The notes under the pieces were generated by a model that saw only the letters and a program-made list of their open reading frames with translations, did no database searches and was not told the DNA's origin. From Lytechinus pictus (Eukaryota), in assembly GCF_037042905.1 (NCBI RefSeq), contig NC_087257.1, forward strand, positions 28,768,001 through 28,832,000: a stretch of DNA of 64,000 nucleotides, in the 5' to 3' direction. The stretch's first letter is position 1, and each line of letters opens with the position of its first letter. This document shows positions 43,875-64,000 of the stretch, piece by piece. The translations under genes and the position numbers were made by a program.

Positions 43875-46800
43875 AGATCACAGACTTTGACTGATCTGAG
43901 AATCACTCACAAAATGATTCAATATCATATCTACACATTGTCATACAAACTCACTGATACAAGAAAAAAAATATTAAGAAATTGATGGAAAGCCCAGGTT
44001 TTCTTCCTATGCTTTTTATGTTTTTCTTACTTTTCATCTCAAATCTTTCCAACACTGCTATATTCACTTTCTTTAGTAATTTTACAAAGAGATGACTTAT
44101 AAAATATAAAGAATTATGCATCTCTTTGTATATAAAGCTGTGATATACATGTAGCACCCCTAAAATATCAAAACGATATTCAAACGATTGGCCACAACTT
44201 TTATGTGCATCCCAAAATCACTTCACACAAAGTGATCTTGAATATCTTTATAAGGGGGGGGGAGGTACTTTGATATTCTTCAAATATACTCCACGGGCAT
44301 TTGAAATATCACATTCAGGGCTAAAGTCTCTCATTCACCGAGTGCAAATCTCATGCCCATTTGGACCTTTTTTGCAATACTTTGTTTTTTATGAATTTCT
44401 ATTGATCACACTTCTTTGGATGCACCCAGATTGAGGTTTAACACTCAAAGTTTGGGGTCTATTTTGTGATGTGGCATCAAGGTTTAATTACTCATAAAAA
44501 AATCCATCAAGTTTTGTTTTATTGATGGCTGCCTTCTCTTTTTATCTTTATTTGATAAATGACTTTCTGTGTACAAAGCTATCCACATATATATGATGCA
44601 CCACTATCATCTAAGCGCCATCTCAAGCTGAATAGATGTTGGAACATAATGGTGTGAGCTGTATTGTTCATTTGCATTAATCATGCAAGCTTCATTCAAA
44701 ATGAGATTTGGATGTTACAGCATAATGAGGTTTGTACACTGTACTATAGCTACCTTTTTGCCAAAATCCTGTTTCTTACATTAAAGTCTTTACCTATTAC
44801 ATTACATGTAATGTAGCTTACGAGATGTGAACATTTCAATAGGTCTAGGAAACAAAATATGATTTGTAATCCTCACATAAACACAAGCTTTTGGTAACTT
44901 AGAGGGGTAAGTTATAAAATTGTGTTTGACACACAAAGCTTATACAACAACGCAACAATTTTTTCAACAAATCGGCTCCACGCAGTAAAGACATGTATTT
45001 GATTTTTCATCCTACACTCAGTGGTAAGTTTTGTGTAAACTGGTCCCAATGACAAGAAAATTACAAAACAAAATAACCTGATAAGGCATTCCAAAAGCAG
45101 CACTTTTCATTTCAGACTCATGAAAATATGACGTCTAATGATAACAGACTATGCATGGGAGTAAACAGGGAATACATGTTCTTGTCAAACCATGTAAAAT
45201 TCCTGAAATTAACCTTCAAAATTCTTGACCCAGACAGGTTTACATTTAATGAGTCAATTTTATTCAAACGTTCACCAACTTCCTTTTCTGATATTTTCTC
45301 TTTTCATTTCAACCAACTTTCCACTTGGATTAGATTCCCCTTTTTCAATTTAACCAGGGCTCCCAAACACATTTTTTTCCCATCAATTGCTAAAATAGCA
45401 ATGGCCAATCAAGATCATTGTTGGATAACCAGGAACCAATCAGAATTGCTCATTCATATTTAAAATCCATAGCAAACCTCTGTGTTACAGGTCCAGAGCT
45501 GTGTATAAAAGCCTTTGAGTGTGTCCACAATAATCATGGCATCTTAGGAATGTAGAACTAACTTTGCTTTCTTGTATTTTCAGTTTTAATCTCCTTCAAA
45601 AGAAAGCATTTTGTTAAGTTTAAACCAAAGATTATTAAACTCTTTGCATTTACTTGGAAGACAAAATAGAAATTAAGCAGCAAATCTTTTTTGAGTGACA
45701 TTCTATTTTAGTGCAGAAACAATATTTGAACCTTGTCAAGACCTAATAATTTGTACACGGATTGGTTTAATGAGGGTGTCTTTTTCAGAAAAAAAATAGC
45801 CCTTTTATATTCCTGATAATTAAGTAGCTTTATAGCTGAAGAAAAGGATAGTCAGTGGTTTTACATCATCTTCCCTATTCATGGTTGTGGGGGTGGGGAT
45901 TGCACTGATATTTATGGTAGGAGAAGAAGGGTTGAGATGTTGAGTATTCCTGCCGAGAAGTGCAACCCTATTAATAGCCTGGAATATTCTTGGTAAGGGT
46001 GTTAGGACTTGGGAGCTATCTATTCCCCTTCATTTTACAAATTTTATACCTCCATTCTTTAGTTTATATCTATCAGATTTCATTATTGTTAGATCCTATA
46101 CATTGCATTAGAATGTTCCAGTATTCTATACATGGGTGGCTTTGCAAATATATCAACCATCAGGCTTACATGTATATCAAAATGGCATCTGTATGCATTT
46201 TCCAAAGTGTTATACAGTATGCCTAAAATAGTGGATTCCCATGAATACACCACTTCAATAGCATGAACAGGAGGTTTGAGTTTGAAGTCAATCTTTAAGA
46301 ACAACTCATCACATTGGTTAGATCATGCTAGGGCGGTGCCCAATACTGACTAATCTACCAATGAGATTATTTGTTAAATATCACATGTGCATTGGGACTC
46401 ATGCAAGATGACTTTGAGTCACATTGAACCCTTCATGAAAAATCTCCTAGGACTCGTTCCCTTCGGTCTCAATTACTGATTTGCTGGGAGTTTGGAACCA
46501 GTGGGCCTACAATGAAGCCGTATACTATCCGAGAATGTCGCAGAATAAGTGAACAACGTTACATTCACCGCATCACCTGCATAGCATTCGGTTCTTCTTG
46601 GATTCTTCTTTTAAGACACATCATCGGAATATTGCAAGATAAATAATTGAACTTCTTCTGAGTATTAGAAAGATTCAAATATAGTAGTAGTATATGCTCT
46701 TGCTGACTTGACGCACCTCCAATGTATATATACATGAAGACTATAAAATATTCTTGTCATAAGTTTCTTTTTGGCTGTCTTCCACCAGAAAGGCCTACAG

Positions 46801-46946
46801 CAGGCATAAATTCTCCAAATGGACCCTTGCCAAGTGCTTCCTTCATGTTTTTTTTTACCAGCTTAGGTGGTACTGCATTGTTAGGATGGTTGGGCAAGGC
46901 AAGGACTGGTCCTTTCTGTCAATGGAGAGCCAGTGCATCAATATCC

Positions 46947-49900
46947 CTAAGCTACAGAAAAAAAGTGAAGATCCTATTGTCTTGGGGGTGCTGGGGGTTG
47001 CCCTCTCTTTGTACCTAATTTAAGAGATAGGAAAGAAAAGAAAATAGGCTCTTAAAATTAACAAATAAAAATAAAATGGATATTTATTTATTGATATCAA
47101 AGCAACAAACAAAAGCAAAGACAGATGCCATACTTCAAACCAAAACCAAAATGCAATTAGATTATAGTTGATGATTGATAGGTTAATGTATATATATGGG
47201 CAATCACACATCGACAGTTTAGATGGCGATTCAATGCAGTTTTTCCTCGACGTTGGATGCCATCAGAAATTGTGGAGTTTGGCCAATATGTATTCAATAG
47301 ATGACCACAAGGCTTGCATTGCTTTGTTAGGCAAGCACAATTCAAAAGATATCTGGAAATGTTGTTACCAACTGAAAGTGAATTGACCAAACTCTATAAA
47401 AAAAGAGCTGCATCTAACTTCAGGGCAAACCGCCATAAAACGGGCAATCGCCCCTTTAAGGGATGTGGAAACCCACTTTCAATACCTCGTCAGTTTGAGG
47501 ACTCTTCTTGTCAGTGCAGGAACACCCTTGGCAAAACATTTTCGCGCACCCCATCAGTGCAGAAACGCCTTTACACAATGCAATTTCATAATATACATGC
47601 TGCTAAGGGCGTTTTGCACCCATGCAATGCACTAAAGTGTGATGTTAAGGGCGTTCTTGCACCAACACGATGAACTGATGGATGTTCACCCTAATACCAT
47701 GTTGGTTCAATCAAAAGCGGTAAGAAGAATGGAAAGTATTAATCAACTCATCAAAGAATAAAGGATTTTCAATTTCCCAAACCATAACTGATAATAAAAT
47801 ATATTTCTGCTTTTTTTTTTAAACTCAACTTGACTTTAATAAGGGTGAGCTTTCATTTTAATTCTCTCAATTATCCAAGAGATAAATTGTGGTTTCTAAC
47901 TGGGTCCTAACATGCTCATTGCAATCGGTTACATCGTAATTGCAATAAATGGAGAAAAAAACTTCAAAAATAATGCAAATAATATTGGTGTATTTCTTGT
48001 TTCAATGTATTCATGGCTTTCATGCATACATGCAAGATACTTTAGCATACATGTTTCTTGGCTAGAAAATGGGAGGAAAAGAACAGATAGTACACTGAAT
48101 CTTCTAAACATGCATGGAAAATTCAGTATACATGCCCACTCTATAAACTTAAATGCTCTGTGGGTAGAAATCTTTTGCTGCAATATCAGACGCAAAAAAA
48201 ATGGCACATTTGCAATTGGTTTATTGTTGGTCATATCACCAGACTACTAAATGATGGATGTTTATAATAAGCAACTAAAGGACTGGCTGCTTTAAGTCCT
48301 TTCCGAGGGACCTTCATGTACCTGGTCATCATTATTGACATTAGTAAAGGGCACCTGGCACCAGCATTAGTTATTGAAAATACATGTATCAAACAAGGTC
48401 ACAGTGTTTCAACACCACTGCTTACAAATTACAGGTAGCTCAATCTTTCAAGTTTGCAGAGTTTAAAATGGATGAGGGTTCATATGGCTGCATTTCGAAA
48501 TATCTCTTTTGAGTCATGCAAAATTTGCCCATTAAAGCATTTTCTTTTTCCCTTGTTTAACTGAAATTAAATCACACCACATCAGGTGAATCATGCAAAT
48601 GAAAGTGTGCAGTTGAGGGGGGGAGGGGGGGTAGGGGGGGGCAGGCAGGGAGAGGCAGTCAGAAATTAAACATCATTCCAAATTCTGTTGCAGCTGCACT
48701 CACCGTTGGAATGTGCATTCGCTTGATCAGATGTAAAGTACATAGCGGAGTCTGATAGCGAAAGGGGCGGGGTGCAAAGAGGGTGCAAGAGAGAAGTACG
48801 ATCAAATCATATCAGGGAATTTTCAGTTTTACATGTAGATGTCGACATAGTGGACCATGGCAATACCGATACCATTGATAAAATTTACATTTACACTTTG
48901 TTATTCAAATGAGGAAGGACAACGTGACACTTCATTTGTAGTCCACAATGTTTTTGTTCTGAACTCATTTGGCAGGGAATGGGAACAGTTAAGAAATTAC
49001 AGCAACAATGAGAAAAAGATAAAAAGCATTCAATATCCATGACTTGAGAATAACAGTGCCCCAACAAACCGCTATGAAGAGTACTTTAAGTAAATTGTTT
49101 ATGGCAAGCATGGTCGTGAATTGTCAAAGCCAACTTGAACATTCAACATTTTTGTTCAAACCAAGTTACATGTACATAAGAATCAATAATATCAATACCT
49201 TTATAATAATAATTAAAAATATTAATAATTATAATAAATAATAATGATAATAATGATAATAACAATAATAATAACAATAATAAATGATAACAATAATGAT
49301 AAAAATAATAAAACAGTATAAATTTAAAATGATCATTAAACAAAACAAAATAAAATGTTTATGTAAAAGCGTTCAATGTTTCAAATGGTGCAATGAGATT
49401 GAATATATACAAGGTAAAGTGGCCAAGAGATAAAAAGGGAAGGATCTGGCCACATGAAGATTTGGACATATCCTGCCAATCTGAACATGAGCAACCTGTA
49501 AAGAACCTTTAGAATAATATTTTTTTCAAAAAAAAAATGTGGAGAACATTATATTTGAGCTATAATCTTTGTATTACGCGTACTTGCTTTTTACCTTATA
49601 CATGTATTCTGCATTTTTTTCTTTTATACATAAAGTCATCATGCTTTTGCTTCGATAACTTTTGTTACTGTATATGAAAACTTTTGTTTTCTGAAAGGTC
49701 AATATCAAACAATAGAAAATGAAATCAACCCAAATCAAGAAACAGAGTAAGCTATAAAATATTAATCATTTCACCACATTCCAGTCAAGGCTTTCACTAA
49801 TTCTTGATATTGATTGCAAAATGCCTTTCGTTTTCCCTTCTTTCTCTTTGTGCTTAAGAATTTGATATTTGTAACTCACATCACCAGTATTTCTGTTTTT

Positions 49901-52900
49901 TCTACCAAGTGGGTAAGATCATACCTGTATGTCAAATAGTCAGTGCAGAGACCAATTACATGTAATTCACTTTTTTTATAAATAATTATCAATTGAAATA
50001 ACATGTTTTGGAAAGGAACAATAAATTTCAACATTGTATGATTTACTGAAAGGAAAAGTCAAGCTAAAAAAAGGTCCAATTTACACTGTACAAAAGAGAG
50101 TGTTTAGCAAAGGATTGTAAACTTATGGTTAAGTACTTAATGAAAATACCATATTGAGCATTCTTTAGAGTGGATACGAGCACTTTAATAGATTTCATAT
50201 TCCATTTAAAAAAATCAATATTATTTAAAATCTAGCCAATAACATCAGCACTCTTTGCAAAAACTGAGATAGAGAGATTCATTCTTGAATCTTGCTACTA
50301 ATTTGAGTTTCTTGTGAAATTAATACACTTTATGAAAAATTGTTTAAAATATCTTGCAGGAATAGAGTTACGGTACTGAAGAAATCAAATTCAGATTTTC
50401 ATAAAATACACTGAAAGGAAAACAAGCAGAGAAAGAAGTTTGTTTCATAATTTTTTGACGTTCTATTAATATACAGGTCTGATTTTAATCAATAACAATA
50501 AATTAGATCAATGTATATAGAAAGTGATTTTATTCAAAACCAAATGTGTGCTCTTTAATAGTGGTCACACAATTTCCTTGCTGCATACACACTAGAATAA
50601 TGTGATGTCAAAAAACCTTTGTAGAAAATGAATGGTATACAAATTGCTTTTGAAGCCAGACTGTTTCCTTGTTAAGGAGTGGAATTACCCAAGGCATGAA
50701 TTTAAACATACTATTGAATCAATTGAACATAAAAACCTATACAATTCAACCAACAAATGTATATGTTGTCTCACATTTACTACAGGGGTAGCACCAGTGC
50801 ATTTCATATGGGGGGGGGGGGACTTTTATTTTCAAATCAGTAAAAAAAACTCAGGTACTAATAATATTGCATTATACATGTATAACCCGATCCTCTCCCG
50901 TCTCTCTTCGCCATTCCTTTTCTTCTTCATTTCTTTGTACCCCCCCCCCTCTTCTTATACCACTATTTGAAAATCAATTCCCCCAATAATACTGCCCTAG
51001 TTTGCTAAAATTCATGATACCTTTATTAGGCCAAACATCGATGACACATTTGTGAACTGTATTCTGTCATCCCATCACAAAAGGAAGCAACTCTGCTTAT
51101 TTTATTTCTTCAATATTAACCTTTTTTTCTTGATTTGGAATATTGCCTGTTTGCTCTACATACATAAAAGGCATTGGAGTCCCACAGTCACCAATTTCTG
51201 AAATGAAGTTGTTTCAAAATCAAGTAACTCTATATATTTCCACATAAAATGACAAATTTTCCTCATTTATTAAGAATCTCATTCCACGGAGTTGCTTCCT
51301 TTTGTCATTGGACGGCACTATTATGATAACAAAGGAACACAAATAATCCCAGTGAATGGGGAAAGGAGGAAGTGAAAACAGCAAAGTGTCTAGAAGTTGA
51401 GACGTTGCATTATAAGACATACATGAATATATATTAATAGAGTCTGGTCTTATAGTACAATAATATGATCTTTGGTCATGTGTAAATGAAATCATAAAGG
51501 AGGGGGGGGGGTTCTGTGAATACATTACAAGTTTGAAGAAAAAAAAATGTGGTGAATACATTAACATATGTATGTACATGTATTGTATCCAATAATAGTG
51601 AGATAAAGATATAATGGTGTATCATATACACTGGAAATGTTAATTGAATAGAAAAGTATTCATAAGTATTCATTGAATGGTGTATAATATAAATCAAGCC
51701 TTATTGCCCACTCCCCATTAAAAATTGAAATTGAAAAAAAAAATTAAATCTTAAAAATCATTAAAAGTACTCTAAATGAATTTGGATTCAAAGTTGTAGT
51801 TGAATGTACATGTATGGCATATATATTAAAAATGCTTTGACATTTTCAATGTTCTGATACAGCCCAAGTTGCCGAACAAAAACGTAGAATTACAGTTCAT
51901 GAACACACATTGCACATAATTATTTGAAGATGATTTTCTAGATGCCCACATGAACTCCTTTCATTATAATTTGTGCTATTCTTAAGCATTTCATGGCTCC
52001 ACAACTACTTTCATCCCAGCGGATGAGACAGCAAAAAAGACTCCTGAAATAACAACTTTTTGCTGCCTCATAACCAATTGGATTTGCTCAGAAACAAGTC
52101 AGAAGGTGGCTGCATGTCATACCTGGGCCCCGTCTTACAAAGAGTTATGAATGATCCAATCAACCACAACTATGGAAAGCCAGCAATGTCAACATATAAA
52201 ATACATGCTTCTTCAAAATATTTTCTAGTTATGAGGTATATTCATACACTGTTTTCTTGACAATTCAGTATGCTTCTCTTTGTTTTCAAAAGAAATTGTG
52301 CAAATTACCTAAAGAAAAAAATTATGACATTGATGGATTTCCATATATATTTCAGATTGATCAGATAAATCGTAACTCTTTGTAAGACGGGGCCCAGGGC
52401 GTCATCTAACACTGGGCCCCGTCTTACAAAGAGTTACGATTTATTCGATCAACCTCAACTGTATGGAAATCCATCAATGTCACAATTTTTTTACAGAAAA
52501 TTAGCGCAATATCCTTCGTAAGCAAAGAGAAGCACACTGAATTTTCACAAAAAAACATGAATGTATGAATATACAGCATATCAAGAAATATTTGGAACAT
52601 GCATTTTAGATGTTGATGCTGTTGGCCATCCATAGTTGTGGTTGATCGGATCAATTGCAATTCTATGTAAGACGAGGCCCAGGCCTCCAGACTCCTCCTT
52701 TAGTTCGTGTGTTCAGCCTCTGTCTCTCAATGACAACATTCATGATTGACTTGGATACTTACTTTGTCTATTTGGTTGTTTGCTTGGATATGTCTTTTGT
52801 GTCTTCTTGAAAGATGGTGGATTAGGGAAGCGTGAGGATGACTTAAAATTGAACCGACCTTCAAAATCATCTGAGAGAGAGAGAGGGGGGGGGGGAGAGA

Positions 52901-55900
52901 AAAAATGGAAATAAATAAAATGTCCATCTGATTATTTGGTATACAATTCAGCTTTTTTGTAATGGTGGAAATACAACAAATTCATATAGCATGCAAGAAT
53001 TGAATAATATTGGTCCATTGAAATAAAACAACTAAAAAATATTGAACGCAGCTCAAAATATAAAAAGCATTCCATAAAATAGTTTTACTCTTGGAATTGC
53101 AATTCTTCCTAAAAATAAAATACCATACTTATTTAAAAAATCATTTGCCATGTATAGAAGAAAGCAAAATAAACCTTGATAAAATGAACATGTGGACACT
53201 TCATACTGTGGGCTCCAGTGTACCACTGAGGTCTTATTAATTATGAACTGGTGCTTCACAAGTGGTTCCATGACAATTGCTCTGCTCTAAATTCCACACA
53301 CCAATCAAATGACCAACTTCAACCCTGGGCTTAACACTATACCCTACCCTTAACCATTAAACATAGAACCCTATGGCAACCCTCACCCAAATCCTACATC
53401 TTAGACAAAATTAAGCCTGGAGCAATTGTCGCAGGAGCAAATGTCGTGTCACTACACAACCAATCCCATTTTAGAAGCATTTTAAAGAACAAAGAATTGT
53501 TATCTGCCAGGTATCCACCTCACCTGGGTATAGTGTGGCAATTACCAAAAACAATTTAGTTATTTCTACAAAATTTGAACCCGCACCTTGGGAACAAACT
53601 ACAGAACCTAAGATTTTTTTTCCTAATAATTATCTGCCCATTTGAATTAATATTGTTTCGGTGTTGGGTACGCTATTAAACAATGTATGCAATCTTCACA
53701 GTTCGGTATTTAATATATCTGAATATTGAAACACCTGTATATTTGACCTTGGGTGGGAACAGTCAAACGACTATTAATTAATACTTGGATACCACTTTGT
53801 TTGCTACCATTCGTATACACTGACGGTACATGTACACGTATATACAATAGAAATTAATATTCACAGTGCTGCATTGTTTTCTTTTAATTTTGCATATGTG
53901 ATTGACAATACAGACCTTTTATATGCAATAATATTGCATATTTGGTCCGTTATCATATCCATGTACATGTAGATGCACGGAAATACCTCCTTGCTTCTAC
54001 AGTACAGTTTAAAAAACGTTTATTAAAACACATTGCTTGGAAACTTCTCTTGATAATTCCCTTAATTTTTAAATTCAATAACATGCATGACTAACAAAAT
54101 AAAAACACACATTTGAAATAAGCAATAATCAATAAACCATGAGTTAGTAATTAGTATAGATTAGAAATATTTTTATTCTGAATATTAAGATCATAGCTGT
54201 AAAAATGTACAACCTTTGCAGTTTGAGATCCTTGAACTATTGATAATCAATGCTAAATATTCAAAAAATATTGACGCAATCACAAAAAGAAACAGAAGAG
54301 ATTTATTCAAAGGATAACACTGTATTGAGGAGAGAAAAAAAAACTATTGTTGTGATGCACAATGTTACCTAATTCCTGTAATTCAAACAGAAAATTTCAT
54401 TTGAACTCAATGAAAATACATGGGGACTCTTCTCATTTGTTATAAATTTCTAATTTATCGGGGGGGGGGGGGGGGAGGGGTCATCCGTGATATCTGGCAC
54501 CCTTCTCAATGAGTTGACTAGATTAATACACCAGCCTGATACATGTACACAGTATTTCTGGCACTTTCACAAAAAAGGGATTACAAATGATCACAATGGA
54601 CGGTGATAACCAATGTAAAAAGGGGTAGTAGGAAACTGATATAGACGAAATGACTCATTTATTCCATTGTTCATGTACATGTACTTATTAAGTATTTCCT
54701 CGAGGTGTTAATGCACATTGGCAAAAGTCCTGCATCTGACTTTATGTGAATGTGGCAATAATGACTACATTAATGCCACATATATCACTTCAATTGAACT
54801 GAGGTAGCCTCAATAGGGAAAAAATCTGAGTATTATGTTGTAAGAGTACTTGCCATAAAATGTATTTATAGGCCTGTAACAGAATTGGATTATAACCCTT
54901 TCCTACCCCCCCCCCCCTCCCACAATTTGAGTGACTGGGGAAACGTAAAGCAGCTACATATACAAATAAAAGTTGCATCAAACTTGCTTTTTTTTTAGTA
55001 CTGTGTACTGCCTAAACTGCCTGGCCTGTATTCTTAAGTCAGGTTTAACTTATACCATGGTCTAACTCTGTGCTAAAATTATGGGAAGCCAAAAGTGTCA
55101 GAATTCTTATTCAGTTGTATGTTTCTTATGTTTTCTGTGCTCTTTCCCGATTCATCGATGGTGAAGAAAATCATCTTTTTATACTTTCTAGACAATTATG
55201 AATGATTTGAGAGCCAAATGAGCTGAAATATGGTATTTCTACTGTTAGTTATTTATGTAACAATTGGCTATCCATACTTAAACCACAACTTTAAACTTGA
55301 GTTTAAGTTAAACCCGACTACAGAATAAGGGCCTCTGTGTTATAGTTGTTTTCTTTAATTTTCAGAAGGGAATATCTTGTGTTTTAAATAATCATACCAA
55401 TTTTAGTAATATTTTTCTTAATAGCATTTGGCAAAGTAATAGTAATAAAATTAGTTTATGATACCATGTGAGGCTGCCTAACACAGCAAACGCATCTGGC
55501 ATCAGGCTACAGGATTTTTCCTGACAAAGTTAAAGCCTTCAAAGGGTTCAAATGGATCTAATGTATGGCAAACCCCTTCCACTGTAAGGCTAACCAGTAC
55601 ACTGCAAACAATTGCATTTTTTTTAATGGGAAAATAGTTTGGGCAAGGTAGTCAGAATTTTGCTAAAGATAAAATAAGTTCATACTGATCGAGTATTTTA
55701 GCCAGGTAAGCCAGTCAATGAAAGTAAATTAGGTCGGTGCCAAAAGTAAACAACAGGATATACAAGAAAATTTTAGTCTTTCAAATATTTCACTTTGTAA
55801 AAATCATTTGACTTTTTGACCTAATTTCTACACTTGTGAGGAAAAAGAAACAAAAAAACATTGCAAAATACACTCGCATGTACAGGTGCCTGTAAAATCA

Positions 55901-56685
55901 AAATGATTTGGGGGAAACCCTTTTTTTTTTCTTTTTCAAATCATGCTTTGCATAATTCTACTTCCCGAGGGTGTTTACAGTACATACATGTACTCTCCAC
56001 TCATTACACAATGGTATTCTTTTGGGTTACCATTATTCATCCAAGTCTTGTGAGTCTAAAGTTCATAATATGCAAACATTTCAAAGTTTAACATATTTTG
56101 CAATGGCCTTGGCTATAAACAGAGACTACTTCCACTCTAAATTCCAAGGATTTAAAATAAATCCAAATCAGATGCGGATAGTGACCAGCCAAATGTTGGA
56201 TTTATTCTAAATCTTTAGGATTAACTTTCAAATCTCAAAAGATTTATATTCAAATCGACAAGGATTGTAGTAAACTAAATCTAATATTCAGCTGGTCACT
56301 ATATTCACAGCCGATCTAGATTTTAAATCCTTGGAAATTGGAGTGTATGCCTCCGCTTATTAAATTAAATGATAATTTTTTTTCTATATTGAAAATTTTT
56401 TATTTCAATAATTATGTAGATGTTATACTTCAAATATTCATGACTGCATTATGTATTTCATAGGCGCTAAAATCAACATCAGTGATAATCTGGTGTACAT
56501 ATCACTACCCACAAAAAAGGATACCCAGTCATTCCTAAAGTTGCATCTTACAAATAGTTTTATAAAACACCTAGCCGTACGATGAACCTACCTGAGCTGC
56601 TGGCGGAAGATGCCTGCGCAACACCGTACATATTGCCATACCCATTGTACCCGTTGAAACCCCATCGTCGATTCCCACTTGTCAT
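46947..56685 (-). CDS. WIPF: WAS/WASL-interacting protein family (WIP/verprolin) gene, 3' exons; includes an ATG-bearing candidate alternative first exon
   Basis: Core exon 52870-52763 (tctctctcag|AT...A|gtaagt, phase 1-1) encodes (D)DFEGRFNFKSSSRFPNPPSFKKTQKTYPSKQPNRQ, matching the WIP WASP-binding domain (human [31 protein letters not shown]). Phase-compatible exons: 56685-56592 (ATG...G|gtaggt), 48751-48704 (48 nt) and a terminal exon from 46951 (ttttttctgtag|CT TAG) with a long AT-rich 3' UTR. The core exon is confident; the flanking exons are less so. Confidence 0.7.
49200..49312. repeat. (AAT)n-rich microsatellite
   Basis: Direct reading. Confidence 0.85.
52123..52682. mobile_element. 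Two MITE family B copies in opposite orientation, 14 bp apart
   Basis: Copy 1 at 52123-52397 and copy 2 at 52412-52682, each bounded by CTGGGCCCCGTCTTACA / TGTAAGACG.GGCCCAG. Internal sequences are reverse complements of each other. Confidence 0.9.
52763..52870 (-). CDS. WIPF: WIP WASP-binding-domain exon
   Basis: Strong acceptor and GTAAGT donor; FE.RF.F and KTYPSK motifs. The ORF track shows a different frame over this exon. Confidence 0.88.
55023..55333. mobile_element. MITE family C, most intact copy
   Basis: GGCCTGTATTCTTAAGTCAGGTTTAACTTA...TAAGTTAAACCCGACTACAGAATAAGGGCC. Confidence 0.85.
56133..56345. mobile_element. CACT-terminated MITE
   Basis: CACTCTAAATTCCAAGGATTTAAAAT...ATTTTAAATCCTTGGAAATTGGAGTG. 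Confidence 0.7.
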
Positions 56686-56689
56686 GGTG

Positions 56690-57250
56690 CCCAACTCTGT
56701 ACAACCTTGTCAAGACCAGAGGATTCAGTCACTGCTCCAAACCAAAAACAAACCCCTCCACTTCAATATTAATCCACTAATTCCAGAATATCATGGGGAC
56801 TTCAGAAAGCAAAGCCCGAACTCTTTTTCACGGTGCGATGCAGAGGATCAGAAATTTTCCTTGTGAGATACCTTGACATGCAAGGAGCAATCACTATGAG
56901 AGGTTACGAAACGGTCTTCTGCAGTGCCGTCTGATGCTGTAGTGTAGGATCATTAGTGTTTCCTAGAACGTACAGTACATGTCCAATCAACCCAGGCTGA
57001 CCTAACAGGAAGTGCAAGGGGGACAGCATGACGTGTAGCTGGGGGCGACTCAACCGACCCACGCAAGGATTGGATGGGAGTTTGTGCCAGCTGACATCGA
57101 CGTTCAGAGCTGACAGCTGCTAATTAGACGGCGTTAGGCTTGTCACACAACAAGTGTCTCAATTCAGATACAATGCATTTGCCGCGATACCCGATGGCAC
57201 AGAGTCACAATACAAGCAAACCTGTATGGATGCACGCTCCCCAAGGTGAA
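56690..57250 (-). promoter_or_regulatory. Candidate internal promoter/5' UTR for the short WIP isoform
   Basis: Local CpG/GC-richer island in an otherwise CpG-poor intron. CCAAT boxes (~56983, ~57069), ETS-like CAGGAAGT (~57006) and TGACGT (~57029), directly upstream of the ATG exon. Confidence 0.45.
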
Positions 57251-58181
57251 TTGTTTTCTTGGGTGCCTTGTATGAGGAAAGCCCACTAATTAGTGCAAAT
57301 AAACGATGCCATGTGTTGGCTGTTTAAGGTCAAGTACAGAGGGATCGCTCTGAACAAAAGTGTGAAAGCGTAGTAACTGACACTGTTCATCTACATGTCC
57401 ATCAAAAATTGGCCAGTCATCAATAATTGTATCATTTTTCAAACTGAAAAAAAAAAAAGTTATTTCTGCTAATTTGGCCTTCTGTATTATAAAGTCAAAT
57501 AATCGCGTAAAACGTCATAGCAGTTTCCAAGACCAGTAGCCTGTTCCAATACAACAATGGTATTACACTTTAATACTATCATAGCTACAATAGAATCCTA
57601 GATTGTGATTGGCTGCGGATCCCTGATACCATGGGACGTTGCTATGATAGCAATTAGCAAAGTTACCACACTTGTAACTCTTTTTCAGCAAAGCATCGTT
57701 ATTCAAACTCGAGTTTTACCCAATCCTAAGTATCAATTTGGTAAAAATGAAAAAGTGGCCCAAATCAACTAAAACTCAAGTACATTTTAAGCCAATAATT
57801 GGGTTGTTCCAGAATTAACAACCAAACTTGGGAGTGGACATTTTGATGAGTCTGAGAATGGATTTTATCCTTCTAATGAGCACTTTTCTCATCAAAAGCT
57901 ATATTTTCAATTAAAGTCAAAGGTACCGTATTAAACTCAAACTATATTCATAAATGTGACTTATGTGACAAATATTTAAATGGGAATAGTATTAGTGATA
58001 GTTCCAAAAAAAAGTTTGTACTTTGCAAATAACCCAAAAGTTTGCAACTGAGTCCCTGAGCATAAGTGAAGTACCCCCTCTTTAGCCAGAGTCACTATAG
58101 TCTATAAAGGGAAAGGTCATGCTTTTCATAAAGGAACACCACAAATACAATGCAAATACAAATCATTGAGAATAATAGAAG

Positions 58182-58920
58182 CATGGACCTATGAAGAGAT
58201 GGACGATTAACGCGAGCATTTCTTTGACCCAATGATAGTCACCGTCACCTGGTTATGCGCATCTTAATGAGAACATACAGGTGTTGTAACAATAGCAATT
58301 ACCATGACTACCAAGGGTATCTGATCACTCAAAGACGGAACAGTTTCCCGGTCTTGACTTTTGTTGGCTGATCCCCTGTTTCAGTATGTGCCTTTCAGTC
58401 AATTTGCTTCATATATGGATCAGCAAACTTGAGAAGCAGACGATTTTTATGATATAAAATATGATATTATTCGATCCGCTAACTACCGCTCACACATAAG
58501 GACCTCAATAACATTGAAAGATACACGATCTACACATGTTATGTGCCACGTATATCTGGAATATTATGGAGAAACTTGGGAAAATTGAATTTTAAATGGT
58601 AAACAATCAATCACAATATTGCCTCTATATCAAAATATGCAGACATTTCCCCAAATAAAACACATGGAACTAAGATTAACAAAGGTAAACAAAAACTGCA
58701 CATCGATTATCCATTATTTCATTGATTTTCTATCAACTGCGCATATAATTTGTGAAATATAAATGTCCAATAACGAACTAATTCAGTCCCTTCTCACGGT
58801 GACGATCATAGGACCAAAGAAGACTAGTATGAAGAGAATGTTATTCAGATGACAATTACCGTCACCTGTTAGTGAATTCATTATCTAAGCGATGAATGTC
58901 CATCTCTTCATAGGTCCATG
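58182..58920. mobile_element. Non-autonomous P-element-like DNA transposon, perfect 23-bp TIR, 7-bp TSD
   Basis: CATGGACCTATGAAGAGATGGAC at both ends (inverted). ATAGAAG at 58175-58181 and 58921-58927. Confidence 0.88.
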
Positions 58921-59744
58921 ATAGAAGGGATTGCTGTTCAATAAATTGCATAAGAGCAAAACTTTCTTTATGAATTTACAATAATTTGTGTGCAGTGTAC
59001 AAAATCCAAACAACGTACTGTACACTGCATATTACATGTGCGTTTTGATATTAAAATGAAAATACAGAGTACAGTATACACATCTATGTGTGTTTGTTTA
59101 TCATTTTTTGTTTTCATGTGATTGTTGTTGTTTTTACATTGATAATGGGATTTCTTTTGTTCTTGATAATATAGTTGCCTATTTATTACACTTCCTTATT
59201 GCCTGTCTCCATGGTCTGTTGATTCTCTGTCAAAATAAATTTGATTACAGTTTTGCGACAATACAAAACATAAGGAATAAAAATAAGGAAGATAGCATTG
59301 TGGAACAGATATAATGGCATTGCAAATTGGTCTGAAATCAAGAATGACAAAGTGACATCACTACTATGAGCTATTGTCAGGAGTTTAACGGTGCATACCC
59401 TCAGTAAAAACATTCTATGATAATCTGAATTATCAGTCTACCACAGGTTAAAGGAAAATATGTAATGTAATGTACTGTACATGGAGCAAACTTGGAACAA
59501 AATGTTGAAACTTCTAAAAGACTTCTCTAATAACCAACTTATTGATCAAATCAAAGTAACACTGAAACATGTATGACCTGTCCTTGAGACGACGTTGTGA
59601 CAACCTCACACATTAAAATCTTTTAACAGATTTTCAAGTTCAACTTAAGCTTGTATCTACCATGATACTGACAGAGTGTGAAGCTGGAAAAGGTGAAAAC
59701 AATGAGTTGCTGTTGTGGCTGGGGGCAATGTTTTCTCCAGACTT

Positions 59745-59930
59745 GGTGGAATGTTTCATAAAGCTGTTGGTAAGTTAAGAGAGACTTTAAAAATGACTGG
59801 TAAACCTTTCTTACGTGCTAAATAATCAACAATGAACATTTAATGGTCAATATCATTTACCACAAGAAAGGATCACCAGTCGTTCTTAAAGACACTCTCA
59901 ACTTACGAACAGCTTTATGAAACAGCCCCC
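59745..59930. mobile_element. MITE family A
   Basis: Long TIR as in 63178-63348. Confidence 0.85.
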
Positions 59931-60379
59931 AGTTCATTCCATTGAATCCTTTATAACTTTGAATAAAGGTGATTTCACACTTCATGAATAACAGAATCAG
60001 TCAAATAATATTTCACATAGAAAGAGGAAGAGTGAAACATTGATGCAATTACATGGGTATTTAAACAAAACAGCTTTATTTCTTAGGTGGACTTGGTCAT
60101 TTTAAAGATACTACAATTTTAAGTACAGTATAAACTTAAGGCCTGAGTACTTCAAAAAAAGTTCTTACCATGAAAATAATACCAACTTTATTGCTACTTT
60201 TCAGTGGTCCAAAGTTCAACAGGTTAATAAAAAATGTAGTACAATATCATTTCTTGGGTATTCAATAACTACTGTACATGTACATACATATACACTGTAC
60301 AGTGATGTATATGTACATGTATACAACACTCAGCTTTTCGGAACGAGCCCTCGCTTTATTGAAGTAAAATTTGCAACGC

Positions 60380-61080
60380 ACTATAAAAGTGGTCTAAATT
60401 TAAAGCCTTCCCGGAATGCAACTTCATTGTATTCTGTGTAGCTTGTATTATACTGTAGTTTTCTTGTTGTTCCTTGTTGTTTAATGGGGAATCCAACCCA
60501 AATAAATACTTGTTTTTATAAGGAAAAAATAAATCAGACAAGTTGATAGGTGAAAGTTTGAACAATATTGGACAAACAACAAGAAAGTTATGAATTCTTA
60601 AAAGTTGTAAATATTGGTAATCACTATACCCATGGAGACTACAAATTGGCCGCATATAAGATGTCATTGTGATGTAAGGCAAGGAATACTCTTCCATGTA
60701 CTCCAATACATATTATGACTAAAATGTCATTTTTCCCAAAAGTTTTATTTCAAATTTTTCTTTCATGAGGACATTAAACAGTATACAACCTGGGTTATAT
60801 TTAGATTACTGCCCCAGGGGAATGGGTACTTTATAGGAGAAAACCACAAATCCCTGATAATAAAGTACAGGCCTATGGGAAAGTTGTCCTTGCCCCTTGT
60901 CATAATTTACTTACCCAGTTGCCAATTTGAAATCTCCATAGTATTAGTGATCTCAATTCTAAAGCAGCTATAACTTTTTTATTGCTTGTCTGATTTCTTT
61001 CAAACTTTCACCATTCTGTTTAATTTATTTTTCTCCTTCCCAACACAATATTCCATGGCCAAGGCCGGATTCCCCTTTAA
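60380..61080 (-). mobile_element. Kolobok-like non-autonomous element
   Basis: Ends GGATTCCCCT-TTAA; homologous to 38055-38283. The left boundary is uncertain. Confidence 0.65.
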
Positions 61081-61669
61081 GTTTCAATAGGGTCTGTGGC
61101 CGCAGACTACGAATATGACTCCTTGTTCCAGCAGAAGAAGCATTCATTTTTCAATGCAGCAAAGACATTGTCTCTTTGACACAAAAATACATCCATGGGC
61201 AATCATTCAAGGTCGCATCTCTTTCAATTCAATGATCCTTAATATCAGACATGCATTCAATGCAAATTCTACATAGAATTCACCCTTTTCACAGTCATAT
61301 GTTGAGCTTATTATTATCATTACATGCAAAGCATGGGTGTCTGCATCTTTGTTATGTTGACAATATTGACTTGTTAAAGTAAAGTGTATAGTGCCATGTC
61401 TGTAAACTATACATACTGTACATTACATGTACATGTACTGAGCACAGAATAAGTGTTTGTTAATTCAAAAATATAAAAAATAAAAGCAATTACAAACAAT
61501 GCACATAAAATAAGGAAAAAAGTTTTGACGATGTGAAATGATTATTTTGGCTGCCCTAATAGGGTAGTCATGCTAAAGCCGGGGTAATAGTATGCAACGC
61601 TCAGAAACATTTGTATTACAGTAAGTGCTATATAAATGTTGCATATCATTATTAATTATAATTTTATGT

Positions 61670-61964
61670 AATAATAATAATAGTCAGTTCTTGTACAGTG
61701 CATAACATATTTTGAATAACGTCTCTATGTGGTTCCAAAGGACTTGGATATTATTACCCTGGCTGTAGATCAAGCAGTTAGCTTCCAGCGCTCGGCATTT
61801 CAAGGAATAAATTCCTGCCAGGTACCCATTCACCTCACCTGGGTTGAGTGCAGCACAATGTGGATAAATTTCTTGCTGAAGGAAACTACGCCATGGCTGG
61901 GATTTGAACCCACGACCCTCTCCTTCAAAGTCCAGAGACTAATCCACTGGGCCACAAAACTCCA
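61670..61964 (-). mobile_element. tRNA-derived SINE, same family as 7691-7980
   Basis: Shared head, core and tail; the spurious ORFs at 7805 and 61729 translate almost identically. Confidence 0.85.
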
Positions 61965-62039
61965 TGTAATAAGATGAAAGTGAGGACATGACATCATTTA
62001 TACCCATGACGACATGCAACTCATGCATACCACGGAAAA

Positions 62040-62580
62040 ATGTTAATCTGAACCAATAGGGAAAAATCCAACAAGCATAACACTGACAATTTTATCAAAA
62101 TCGGATGTAAAATAAGAAAGTTATGACATTCTAAAGTTTCCCTTATTTTTCACAAAATAGTTATATGCACAAATCAGTGACATCGAAATGAATTATACAA
62201 TATTTCAATTTTTACAAATTTGACAAGATGCACCAAGTTGACTGAACCATAAAATGTTAAAATGTTAAATGGTAATTTCCGATGTTCAGGGAGGAATAAA
62301 GCTTTCCTTCACATGATGAGGGGAAATTTACATGTGGAATATTTCGTATTTCTATGAATAAAATACAAAAGAAATAGTGAGTGGGTGACATCATCAGTCC
62401 CCACATTAACATAAAGACCAGGATGTGCATATAACTGTTTTGTGAAATTAAGCGAAATTTGAAAATGTCATGAATTTCTTATTTCACATCCGATTTTGAT
62501 GAAATTTTCAGCGTTATGCTAGTTGGATTTTGCTCTTTTTATTCAAATCAACTTTTTGTTGGGATGAACTTGTCCTTTAA
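62040..62580. mobile_element. Kolobok-like MITE with long imperfect TIRs
   Basis: 62060-62170 is the reverse complement of ~62425-62532. The right end is TTGTCCT-TTAA. Confidence 0.7.
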
Positions 62581-63177
62581 AATTCAATGACTTTGTTTAT
62601 TTGTTTTCACATTGTGATGTATTTTTCAGTGTTTACTCAGTAAATTTCACCCTAATATCATTTTCAGCCCGGATTACCCCTTTTTCACTTACTGTGAAAA
62701 TGTCACATATAAATTTGTATGCAACATATCCCACTTTTAATATCAGAGATTCAAGAGAAAAGTACTGACTCTAACATATTCATTGTTTTTAAAATTATCA
62801 TACATGTACATGTATGTATCTAAAATGAAGTCATGAAGAATCTTCATGTTGGCTAGCTCTCCTTCCATTCAAAAAGATGATCTGTTCTACGGCAGGATAG
62901 CCACGTTAATTCAATTTTGCTGGAGAAAAATGTAATGAAATCCCCATCATTTTTCCAGATATATCTCTTTTTGGATAGCTTTCAAGAAGCAGGCTGACTG
63001 GCTTTTGACCTTTTGGTTATTACATTCAGGTAGGGGTTGGATGTAACAGAGCTTGCATCTTTGCACTTTTGCAGACAGGTAGTTTCAAGACACAAACATA
63101 TATATGGTTTTGCATATTTTCTTGTTGAAGTGTCAAATCCGAGTCTGTGCTTGCAGACTAGACCTTTTATTACCCTG

Positions 63178-63348
63178 GTGGGTGTTTCATAAAGCTGTTC
63201 GTAAGTTAAGAGAGACTTTAAGAATGACTGGTGACCCTTTCTTACACGCAAAACCATCGCTAATGAATATACCATTTGCCATAAGAAAGGATCACCAGTC
63301 GTTCTTAAAGTCACTCTTAACTTACGAACAGCTTTATGAAACACCCAC
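63178..63348. mobile_element. MITE family A, intact hairpin copy with CTG TSD (Harbinger-like)
   Basis: ~65-bp near-perfect TIR beginning GTGGGTGTTTCATAAAGCTGTTCGTAAGTTAAGAG; CTG at 63175-63177 and 63349-63351. Confidence 0.9.
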
Positions 63349-64000
63349 CTGGTGTAATACAGTGTATTGAAAAGGAGACCTTTATTAAAAAAAACTGAGA
63401 GGAAAAAAATGAAATTAATGAAAATTTCATCATGATATATATTTATCAGATAAATTTATCAGCAAAAATAGTGTATAACATTGAGAAATGTTTATATAAT
63501 ATAGTGTACATAATCTTTTTGCATGTACATATACATGGAACCCTACAATATGCACCTGCACTTTATAATTTGTAGCTGAATTCCAGGGCTGCCACGCAGT
63601 TAAGTTTACACAGTGTGTTATAGAAAATATAACTTTATTCTTTGTTTTGACAGATATTTCATGTACTCTTGTATTTTATTTGTTATGGAAACGTTGCATA
63701 AATCATGAAATTAAATTTCATAGAAACAAAAGAATATTGTTGCCATTTCATGGCCTATAAAGGAAGTTTGTCTGAAGTAGAATGCACACCTTAAAAAACC
63801 TTTCATGGTTGCCCGGATCTGGCAACCAATACAATTTTCAGGTGGTTTGAAGCATGAACAAGTCGTTATAATTCACTTTTTATTTTGAATGGGTCAATAT
63901 GAAATTACCGAACAAGATCTTTTCATTGTGGGTCTTGTTTCTGGTTTTAAATACAAAAACTTTTTTCTTCCCAAGTCAGATGTGAATATTTGCAAGGATA

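Follow-up and report, generated by a model that had tools for sequence, protein, structure and literature searches.

An alternative first exon in the WIP gene of the sea urchin Lytechinus pictus probably yields a transcript encoding only the WASP-binding tail

Introduction

WIP governs how stable and how active WASP and N-WASP are and where they are located, and its modules (the WH2 motif, the poly-proline region and the WASP-binding tail) have been separated experimentally. Can a WIP gene also release its tail by itself? The question is raised by a 64,000-nucleotide stretch of Lytechinus pictus DNA (C13:28768001-28832000, the window; the genome is 812 Mb), which contains the 3' part of the sole WIP/WIPF (verprolin-family) gene. 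An initial annotation of these letters described an ATG exon that is preceded by an internal promoter and spliced to the exon for the WASP-binding domain (WBD), and proposed a hidden WBD-only protein. Here we follow this proposal through the gene structure, the RNA data, protein databases and the rest of the genome. All WIP features lie on the minus strand; plain positions count from the first letter of the window, and a slash within a splice site marks the exon boundary.

Results

An alternative first exon within the WIP gene

On the minus strand, GCACC-ATG at 56685 follows an in-frame TGA 9 codons upstream, and its Kozak context is favourable, with A at -3. The coding part of this exon (e1) comprises 94 nt, that is, 31 codons plus 1 nt, encodes MTSGNRRWGFNGYNGYGNMYGVAQASSASSS and runs to 56592, the final exon base, after which stands a phase-1 donor, G/GTAGGT. 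Start codon, upstream stop and donor can all be read in the sequence as the initial annotation had given them. In a genome search, e1 and the WASP-binding exon occurred once each. The tail must therefore belong to full-length WIP, and a partial gene duplicate or second WIP-tail locus is ruled out.

RNA data came from two contig runs of different studies, X4 and X17, both of which contain words of e1, and from two raw-read runs, X19 and X20. The RNA label of these runs was a guess. In X4 and X17, the WASP-binding exon lies in high-depth contigs (X4 record 9, 1132 nt, depth 133.5; X17 record 1, 2069 nt, depth 33.6) that stop at the flanking introns and are thus spliced; both runs therefore contain RNA. 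Neither of these main WIP contigs has a piece on e1, i.e. they skip it. The exon is instead found in contigs of lower depth, ~3-7% of that of the main transcript contigs. X17 record 4 (352 nt, depth 2.3) is colinear with the genome from 56592 to 56943 and ends exactly at the donor, and X4 record 11 (189 nt, depth 4.5) spans 56592-56773, with 7 additional letters beyond 56592 that do not match the genome. The contig end shared at 56592 reads as a GT donor on the minus strand but not on the plus strand, so the strand of e1 is fixed and a plus-strand origin of these contigs is ruled out. Further upstream, X4 record 12 (depth 3.1) spans 57014-57167, and the unique intron around the e1 contigs (55400-55999 and 57200-57999) has essentially zero depth. 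Contig depth is a crude proxy for expression, and contigs do not reveal transcription starts.

A candidate acceptor, TGTACAG/AG (56698-56697), precedes the ATG, and the initial annotation had noted that splicing at this site would turn e1 into a cassette exon. Such splicing is not seen: both e1 contigs pass straight through the site, colinear with the genome for 77 and 247 further bases. The pyrimidine content of the site (-20 to -3) is 0.5, as compared with 0.78-1.0 at the four other acceptors flanking WIP coding exons. Because the contigs are unspliced through the candidate acceptor, e1 is an alternative first exon and not a cassette exon. It uses no acceptor, ends at a used donor and lies within an intron of a longer transcript, the ~19-kb intron that separates the proline-rich exon from the WASP-binding exon of full-length WIP. 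Thus, e1 is the 5'-terminal exon of a minor transcript that starts at or beyond 56773 to 57167. At the level of transcripts and annotation, the internal promoter of the initial annotation is supported, as e1 behaves as a 5'-terminal exon and the e1 reading frame is that of two RefSeq proteins described below.

The X4 contig carries a single variant in the coding part of e1, T>C on the plus strand at 56680 (ACA>ACG), which is synonymous in codon 2 of the short open reading frame (ORF). In the leader, two additional variants are present at 57097 and 57099.

Short products and the corrected 3' end of the gene

Joining e1 to the WASP-binding exon and to a terminal exon that begins at 47014 gives an 80-residue protein that is identical to P0001 (RefSeq XP_054767936.1), and the same join with a 48-nt exon included gives exactly the 96 residues of P0002 (RefSeq XP_054767935.1); the e1 ORF accounts for residues 1-31 of both. 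When the open frame that surrounds the ATG exon was used as the query, P0001 was the sole protein returned; its 90% cluster adds only P0002. The two RefSeq entries show no sequence difference from the short isoform and are automatic predictions for which no function is described. The isoform is therefore not hidden, contrary to the initial proposal; its absence from the ORF track may be true of a list compiled in prokaryote style, whereas both products are present in RefSeq. Neither a natural WBD-only WIP isoform nor a paper describing these models was found in the literature searched.

The WASP-binding exon, which is preceded by a long C/CT-rich pyrimidine tract, encodes DDFEGRFNFKSSSRFPNPPSFKKTQKTYPSKQPNRQ in phase 1 and ends at a donor A/GTAAGT. 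All WIP junctions are in phase 1 and every joined isoform stays open. The first D of the DDFE motif is a split codon, and e1 and the proline-rich exon both end in G, so that both yield D. The in-frame join of e1 to the WASP-binding exon and on to the 48-nt exon, as initially proposed, is confirmed by the reading frames. In contrast, the last exon has to be moved. The acceptor claimed for it at 46951 (ctgtag/CTTAGG, with a product ending in HSNA) lies in the 3' untranslated region (UTR), 23 nt past the true stop. The terminal exon uses the acceptor at 47016-47015 (aaattag, followed by GTACAAAG), and its stop codon occupies 46976-46974. This exon corrects the claimed products of 84 and 68 residues to 96 and 80, and restores the conserved KRGxPPxPP tail that the claimed C-terminus loses. 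The 3' UTR runs below 46974 to at least ~46070 and probably past 45500; a further run, X1, contains 99% of the sampled words of 45500-47020 and none of the e1 words. The stop codon of the short ORF sits in the last exon, and the exon-junction rule for nonsense-mediated decay is therefore inapplicable.

The main contigs are in line with this 3' structure. Both match the genome for 3 nt past the donor of the WASP-binding exon, where the intronic gta equals the GTA that begins the 47014 exon, and both continue for 943 nt beyond the WBD piece. These features fit a direct join of the WASP-binding exon to the last exon with the 48-nt exon skipped; the latter belongs to the 96-residue isoform and is skipped in the 80-residue isoform as in the main RNA contigs.

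The full-length gene extends beyond the window

The initial annotation had reported no WH2 or polyproline exon in 57-64 kb, and none was found there. As a property of the gene, this absence is a window-edge effect, as the check for such exons beyond 64000 that the annotation had proposed located both on the same strand, 11.5-15 kb past that position. The best WH2 (PF02205) match of the genome lies at C13:28846794-28846871, 14.8 kb past the window end. Its exon, ~22 kb upstream of e1, starts with an ATG, encodes MPPPPPPPPPGPPPPPTLSQANTAKPNLSKNAQKSRGALLGDIHKGMKLKK... and ends at a phase-1 donor, the product reading MPPPPPPPPPGPPPPP...GALLGDIHKGMKLKKT. The proline-rich exon follows ~2.4 kb downstream, ~11.5 kb past the window end, and encodes 288 residues; in the coordinates of the extended window the upstream WIP exons occupy 75.5-79.0 kb. 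No Pfam family matched the proline-rich exon, which its low complexity would lead one to expect, and no other proline-rich frames were found between it and the WASP-binding exon. The gene thus has all three features by which sequence defines the WIP/verprolin family: a WH2 motif after a poly-proline run, a proline-rich region and a WASP-binding tail.

Joined, the WH2, proline-rich, WASP-binding and last exons form an open frame of 400 residues, or 416 with the 48-nt exon. Upstream of the WASP-binding exon, X4 record 9 has 82 and X17 record 1 has 1019 extra letters outside 52600-58599; by their length, the 1019 letters would suit the 867-nt proline-rich exon plus part of the WH2 exon. Most probably, the proline-rich exon splices directly onto the WASP-binding exon, and this in turn onto the last exon at 47014. 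When the proline-rich exon was used to look for full-length WIP proteins of urchins, low-complexity matches swamped the 8000 candidates and none of them scored. An acceptor (tttcag/ATACC) precedes the WH2/ATG exon at L004:5086-4971, so that one or more non-coding 5' exons must lie still further upstream, past 79.1 kb in extended coordinates.

Features of the WIP gene of L. pictus. Plain positions are those of the window; L004 positions lie beyond its end.
Feature	Position	Strand	Remarks
Proposed alternative first exon (e1)	56592..56943 (minimum extent)	minus	coding part 56685-56592, remainder 5' leader
G+C-richer island, putative intronic promoter and/or further leader	56944..57250	minus	composition; low-depth RNA contig
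WASP-binding (WH1/EVH1-binding) exon	52763..52870	minus	phase 1 at both ends; common to full-length and short isoforms
48-nt cassette exon, (N)SAMYFTSDQANAHSN	48704..48751	minus	phase 1 at both ends; acceptor tatcag/, donor /gtgagt
Terminal exon, coding part, (G or S)TKRGQPPAPPRQ plus stop	46974..47014	minus	joined translation equals P0001 and P0002
ATG/poly-Pro/WH2 exon	L004:4970-4784	minus	PF02205, 45.9 bits (cut-off 23.1)
Proline-rich exon, 867 nt	L004:2386-1520	minus	31% proline, many PPPPP runs, phase 1 at both ends

The predicted short products carry the complete WASP-binding tail

Residues 29-69 of P0001 align without gaps over 41 residues with human WIPF1 in PDB 9s9x_B (E 0.0011), and residues 35-68 align, again without gaps, over 34 residues with the WIP part of the WIP-N-WASP EVH1 fusion 2ifs_A (E 0.56). 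In human WIP, the epitopes DEWE (448-451), FYF (454-456), poly-Pro and KSYPSK are needed for binding of WASP and for its protection from degradation (PMC7407642). The urchin tail has a counterpart of each: DDFE for DEWE, FNF for FYF, FPNPPSF for the poly-Pro epitope (LPPPEPY) and KTYPSK for KSYPSK. A likely WASP/N-WASP orthologue, the presumed partner of the WIP tail, lies at C3:47725176-47752891 on the minus strand. Its WH1 domain is split over several exons (47.751-47.753 Mb), and two WH2 motifs stand side by side at 47.725 Mb. Judged by these motifs, the 80- or 96-residue product should, if translated, bind the WH1 domain of WASP; with neither WH2 nor poly-proline module, it would not link WASP to actin or SH3 partners.

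A G+C-richer island precedes e1

The G+C content of 56500-57499 is 44-45%, as compared with 30-35% in the flanks. It peaks in 57000-57199 at 53%, with a CpG observed/expected ratio of 0.79 against 0.55 for the whole window (mean G+C 0.35), in agreement with the CpG-richer island that the initial annotation had placed before the ATG exon. Within the putative promoter itself (56944-57250), the G+C fraction is 0.46-0.53. The segment 56571-57400 is single copy in the genome, and likeness to a dispersed repeat is confined to the intronic 56500-56570; a transposable-element origin of the promoter or exon is ruled out by this single-copy status.

Alternative explanations

A weak intronic promoter that yields a transcript with a WBD-only ORF of 80 or 96 residues within the WIP gene is the best explanation overall, and we regard it as probable. 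Several points weigh against it. No read or contig in X4, X17, X19 or X20 directly shows the joint of 56592 to 52870: the X4 contig has only 7 letters past the e1 donor, and the raw reads of X19 and X20 (~6% of each read) leave e1 and the bin 52800-52999 uncovered and are uninformative. The case for this junction comes from the RefSeq models, the reading frame and a strong acceptor. Similarly, the junction between the proline-rich and WASP-binding exons of the full-length mRNA comes from contig arithmetic, and the abundance of the short isoform from contig depth, which gauges expression poorly. The leader contains two upstream ATGs (56794 and 56879) in transcripts that start at or beyond 56943, and with a start at or beyond 57167 four more are added (56953, 56980, 57029 and 57097; six in total); it has no upstream ATG only if transcripts start near 56773. 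Every upstream ORF terminates before 56685. The 31-residue G/N/Y leader has no relative in a word search of 5.8 billion proteins or in an exhaustive HMMER scan of 1.84 billion cluster representatives, so that neither the ATG nor the frame shows a sign of selection. Two weak HMMER matches, P0003 and P0004, were rejected as unrelated repeat proteins with a likeness only in G/Y/N composition. Searches for a short WBD-only protein (53-168 residues) in other species found none; these missing orthologues are weak evidence because echinoderm annotations are few and orthologues of more than 50% identity merge into the same representative. As a rival explanation, the transcript could be real and give little or no protein, none of it with a selected function: a weak intronic promoter would produce low-level by-product RNA whose leader is full of upstream ORFs, and any exon with an ATG and a phase-1 donor would then read into the WIP tail. 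The low depth of the e1 contigs, the absence of e1 from run X1, the two to six upstream ATGs, the low complexity of the leader peptide and the lack of homologues both for the leader and for a short WBD-only protein are in line with such a by-product. However, the ATG has a good context with an in-frame stop just upstream, the exon-junction rule does not apply to its ORF, one contig starts at 56773, which would leave zero upstream ATGs, the island is both G+C-rich and single copy, and the small number of echinoderm annotations weakens the argument from missing orthologues. We consider a transcript of this kind possible, if on balance not likely.

As an internal 105-nt cassette exon (56696-56592) of full-length WIP, e1 would place ELGTMTSGNRRWGFNGYNGYGNMYGVAQASSASSS after the proline-rich region and before the WASP-binding motif. 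The joined model is open, with 435 residues and no stop, an AG is present at 56698-56697, and the exon would be symmetrical in a gene in which all introns are in phase 1. Yet both e1 contigs run on through this AG, its pyrimidine content is below that of the other acceptors, the main contigs skip the exon, and the RefSeq models begin at the ATG, which makes inclusion of e1 as a cassette very unlikely. The low depths of the e1 contigs (2.3-4.5) and the guessed RNA label of the runs could also point to an artefact: unspliced or genomic material may have happened to break at 56592 in both contigs, and the RefSeq model may be predicted ab initio with nothing to support it. It would then be a coincidence that two runs from two studies end at an identical base that is a consensus donor; moreover, the same runs contain clearly spliced WIP contigs, the surrounding unique intron has zero depth, and RefSeq has two isoforms that differ by the 48-nt exon. 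An artefact of this sort is extremely improbable, and a minor transcript from an intronic promoter remains our preferred reading.

Other features of the region and related loci

An Rfam scan of 46000-64000 returned no RNA family. The segment 55020-55340 is a dispersed repeat of ~315 bp with terminal inverted repeats of ~70 nt, resembling a miniature inverted-repeat transposable element (MITE). More than 2000 first-look candidates at 90-94% identity occur genome-wide, and its summed RNA contig depth of ~60,000 in X4 reflects the many copies and not this locus. A high-copy repeat of ~180 bp, at 63172-63360, matches dozens of loci at 92-97% identity; the same loci are matched on the opposite strand at ~83%, i.e. 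the repeat is largely palindromic and likewise MITE-like.

Raw RNA reads, 10-11 per run in two runs, join 52660 to 58182 (regions 52600-52660 and 58182-58600) across 13 extra letters, and loose read ends accumulate in large numbers at 58182. These joins behave like reads from other repeat copies and not like a splice of the WIP gene. On C3:29474323-29493804, minus strand, three WH2-motif exons with identical scores lie 9.7 kb apart; the trio resembles a WH2-bearing gene that was recently triplicated in tandem, though duplication in the assembly is another possibility.

Discussion

How would one gene produce both proteins? The main mRNA would begin beyond the window and run from the WH2 exon through the 867-nt proline-rich exon and the WASP-binding exon to the last exon. 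The single-copy, G+C-richer island at ~56.8-57.2 kb would act as a weak alternative promoter inside the ~19-kb intron, and its transcripts would be spliced from the donor at 56592 to the WASP-binding exon and, with or without the 48-nt exon, to the last exon. The ATG at 56685 would then open an ORF that fuses a 31-residue leader rich in G, N, Y and S to the complete WASP-binding tail. The short protein, if translated, may bind the WH1 domain of urchin WASP as the WIP tail does; it could then shield or occupy WASP while recruiting neither actin (through WH2) nor SH3 partners (through poly-Pro), and would compete with full-length WIP. That a natural WBD-only WIP does occupy WH1, protects or sequesters WASP and uncouples it from actin and SH3 partners, with a lineage-specific G/N/Y-rich leader that might contribute something extra, for example self-association, is a tentative proposal that we consider unlikely.

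The human WIP tail (WIPF1 ~448-485; PDB 2IFS and 9S9X chain B) resembles the urchin segment in its gapless alignment over 34-41 residues and in the matching places of its epitopes, at modest identity. The human segment is the tail of a 503-residue protein, whereas the urchin segment is apparently also made with an unrelated leader. A 403-residue isoform of human and mouse WIP without the WASP-binding region, mini-WIP, is described in PMC3397550 (Koduru et al., 2007). Mini-WIP is a natural isoform that separates the actin/SH3 module from the WASP-binding module, as the urchin isoform would, but the two are reciprocal: mini-WIP keeps WH2 and poly-Pro and loses the tail, and the urchin isoform would be tail only.

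For now, the short isoform is a modest lead and not a discovery: it is minor, apparently lineage-specific and already an automatic RefSeq model. The gain is a corrected gene structure, with the true C-terminal exon, the positions of the full-length exons and the ATG exon as a first exon. An engineered WIP-derived peptide is reported to have restored the WASP level in patient lymphocytes, in a 2011 study from Massaad and colleagues. By analogy, stabilisation of WASP by a WASP-binding WIP fragment alone would be the activity proposed here for the urchin product, although that peptide is man-made and human, and the urchin product would be natural. If true, a natural tail-only isoform would be a built-in competitor or chaperone that tunes the coupling of WASP to actin and SH3 adaptors, and a natural counterpart of the engineered WASP-restoring peptide, for which the sea-urchin embryo offers a tractable test system.

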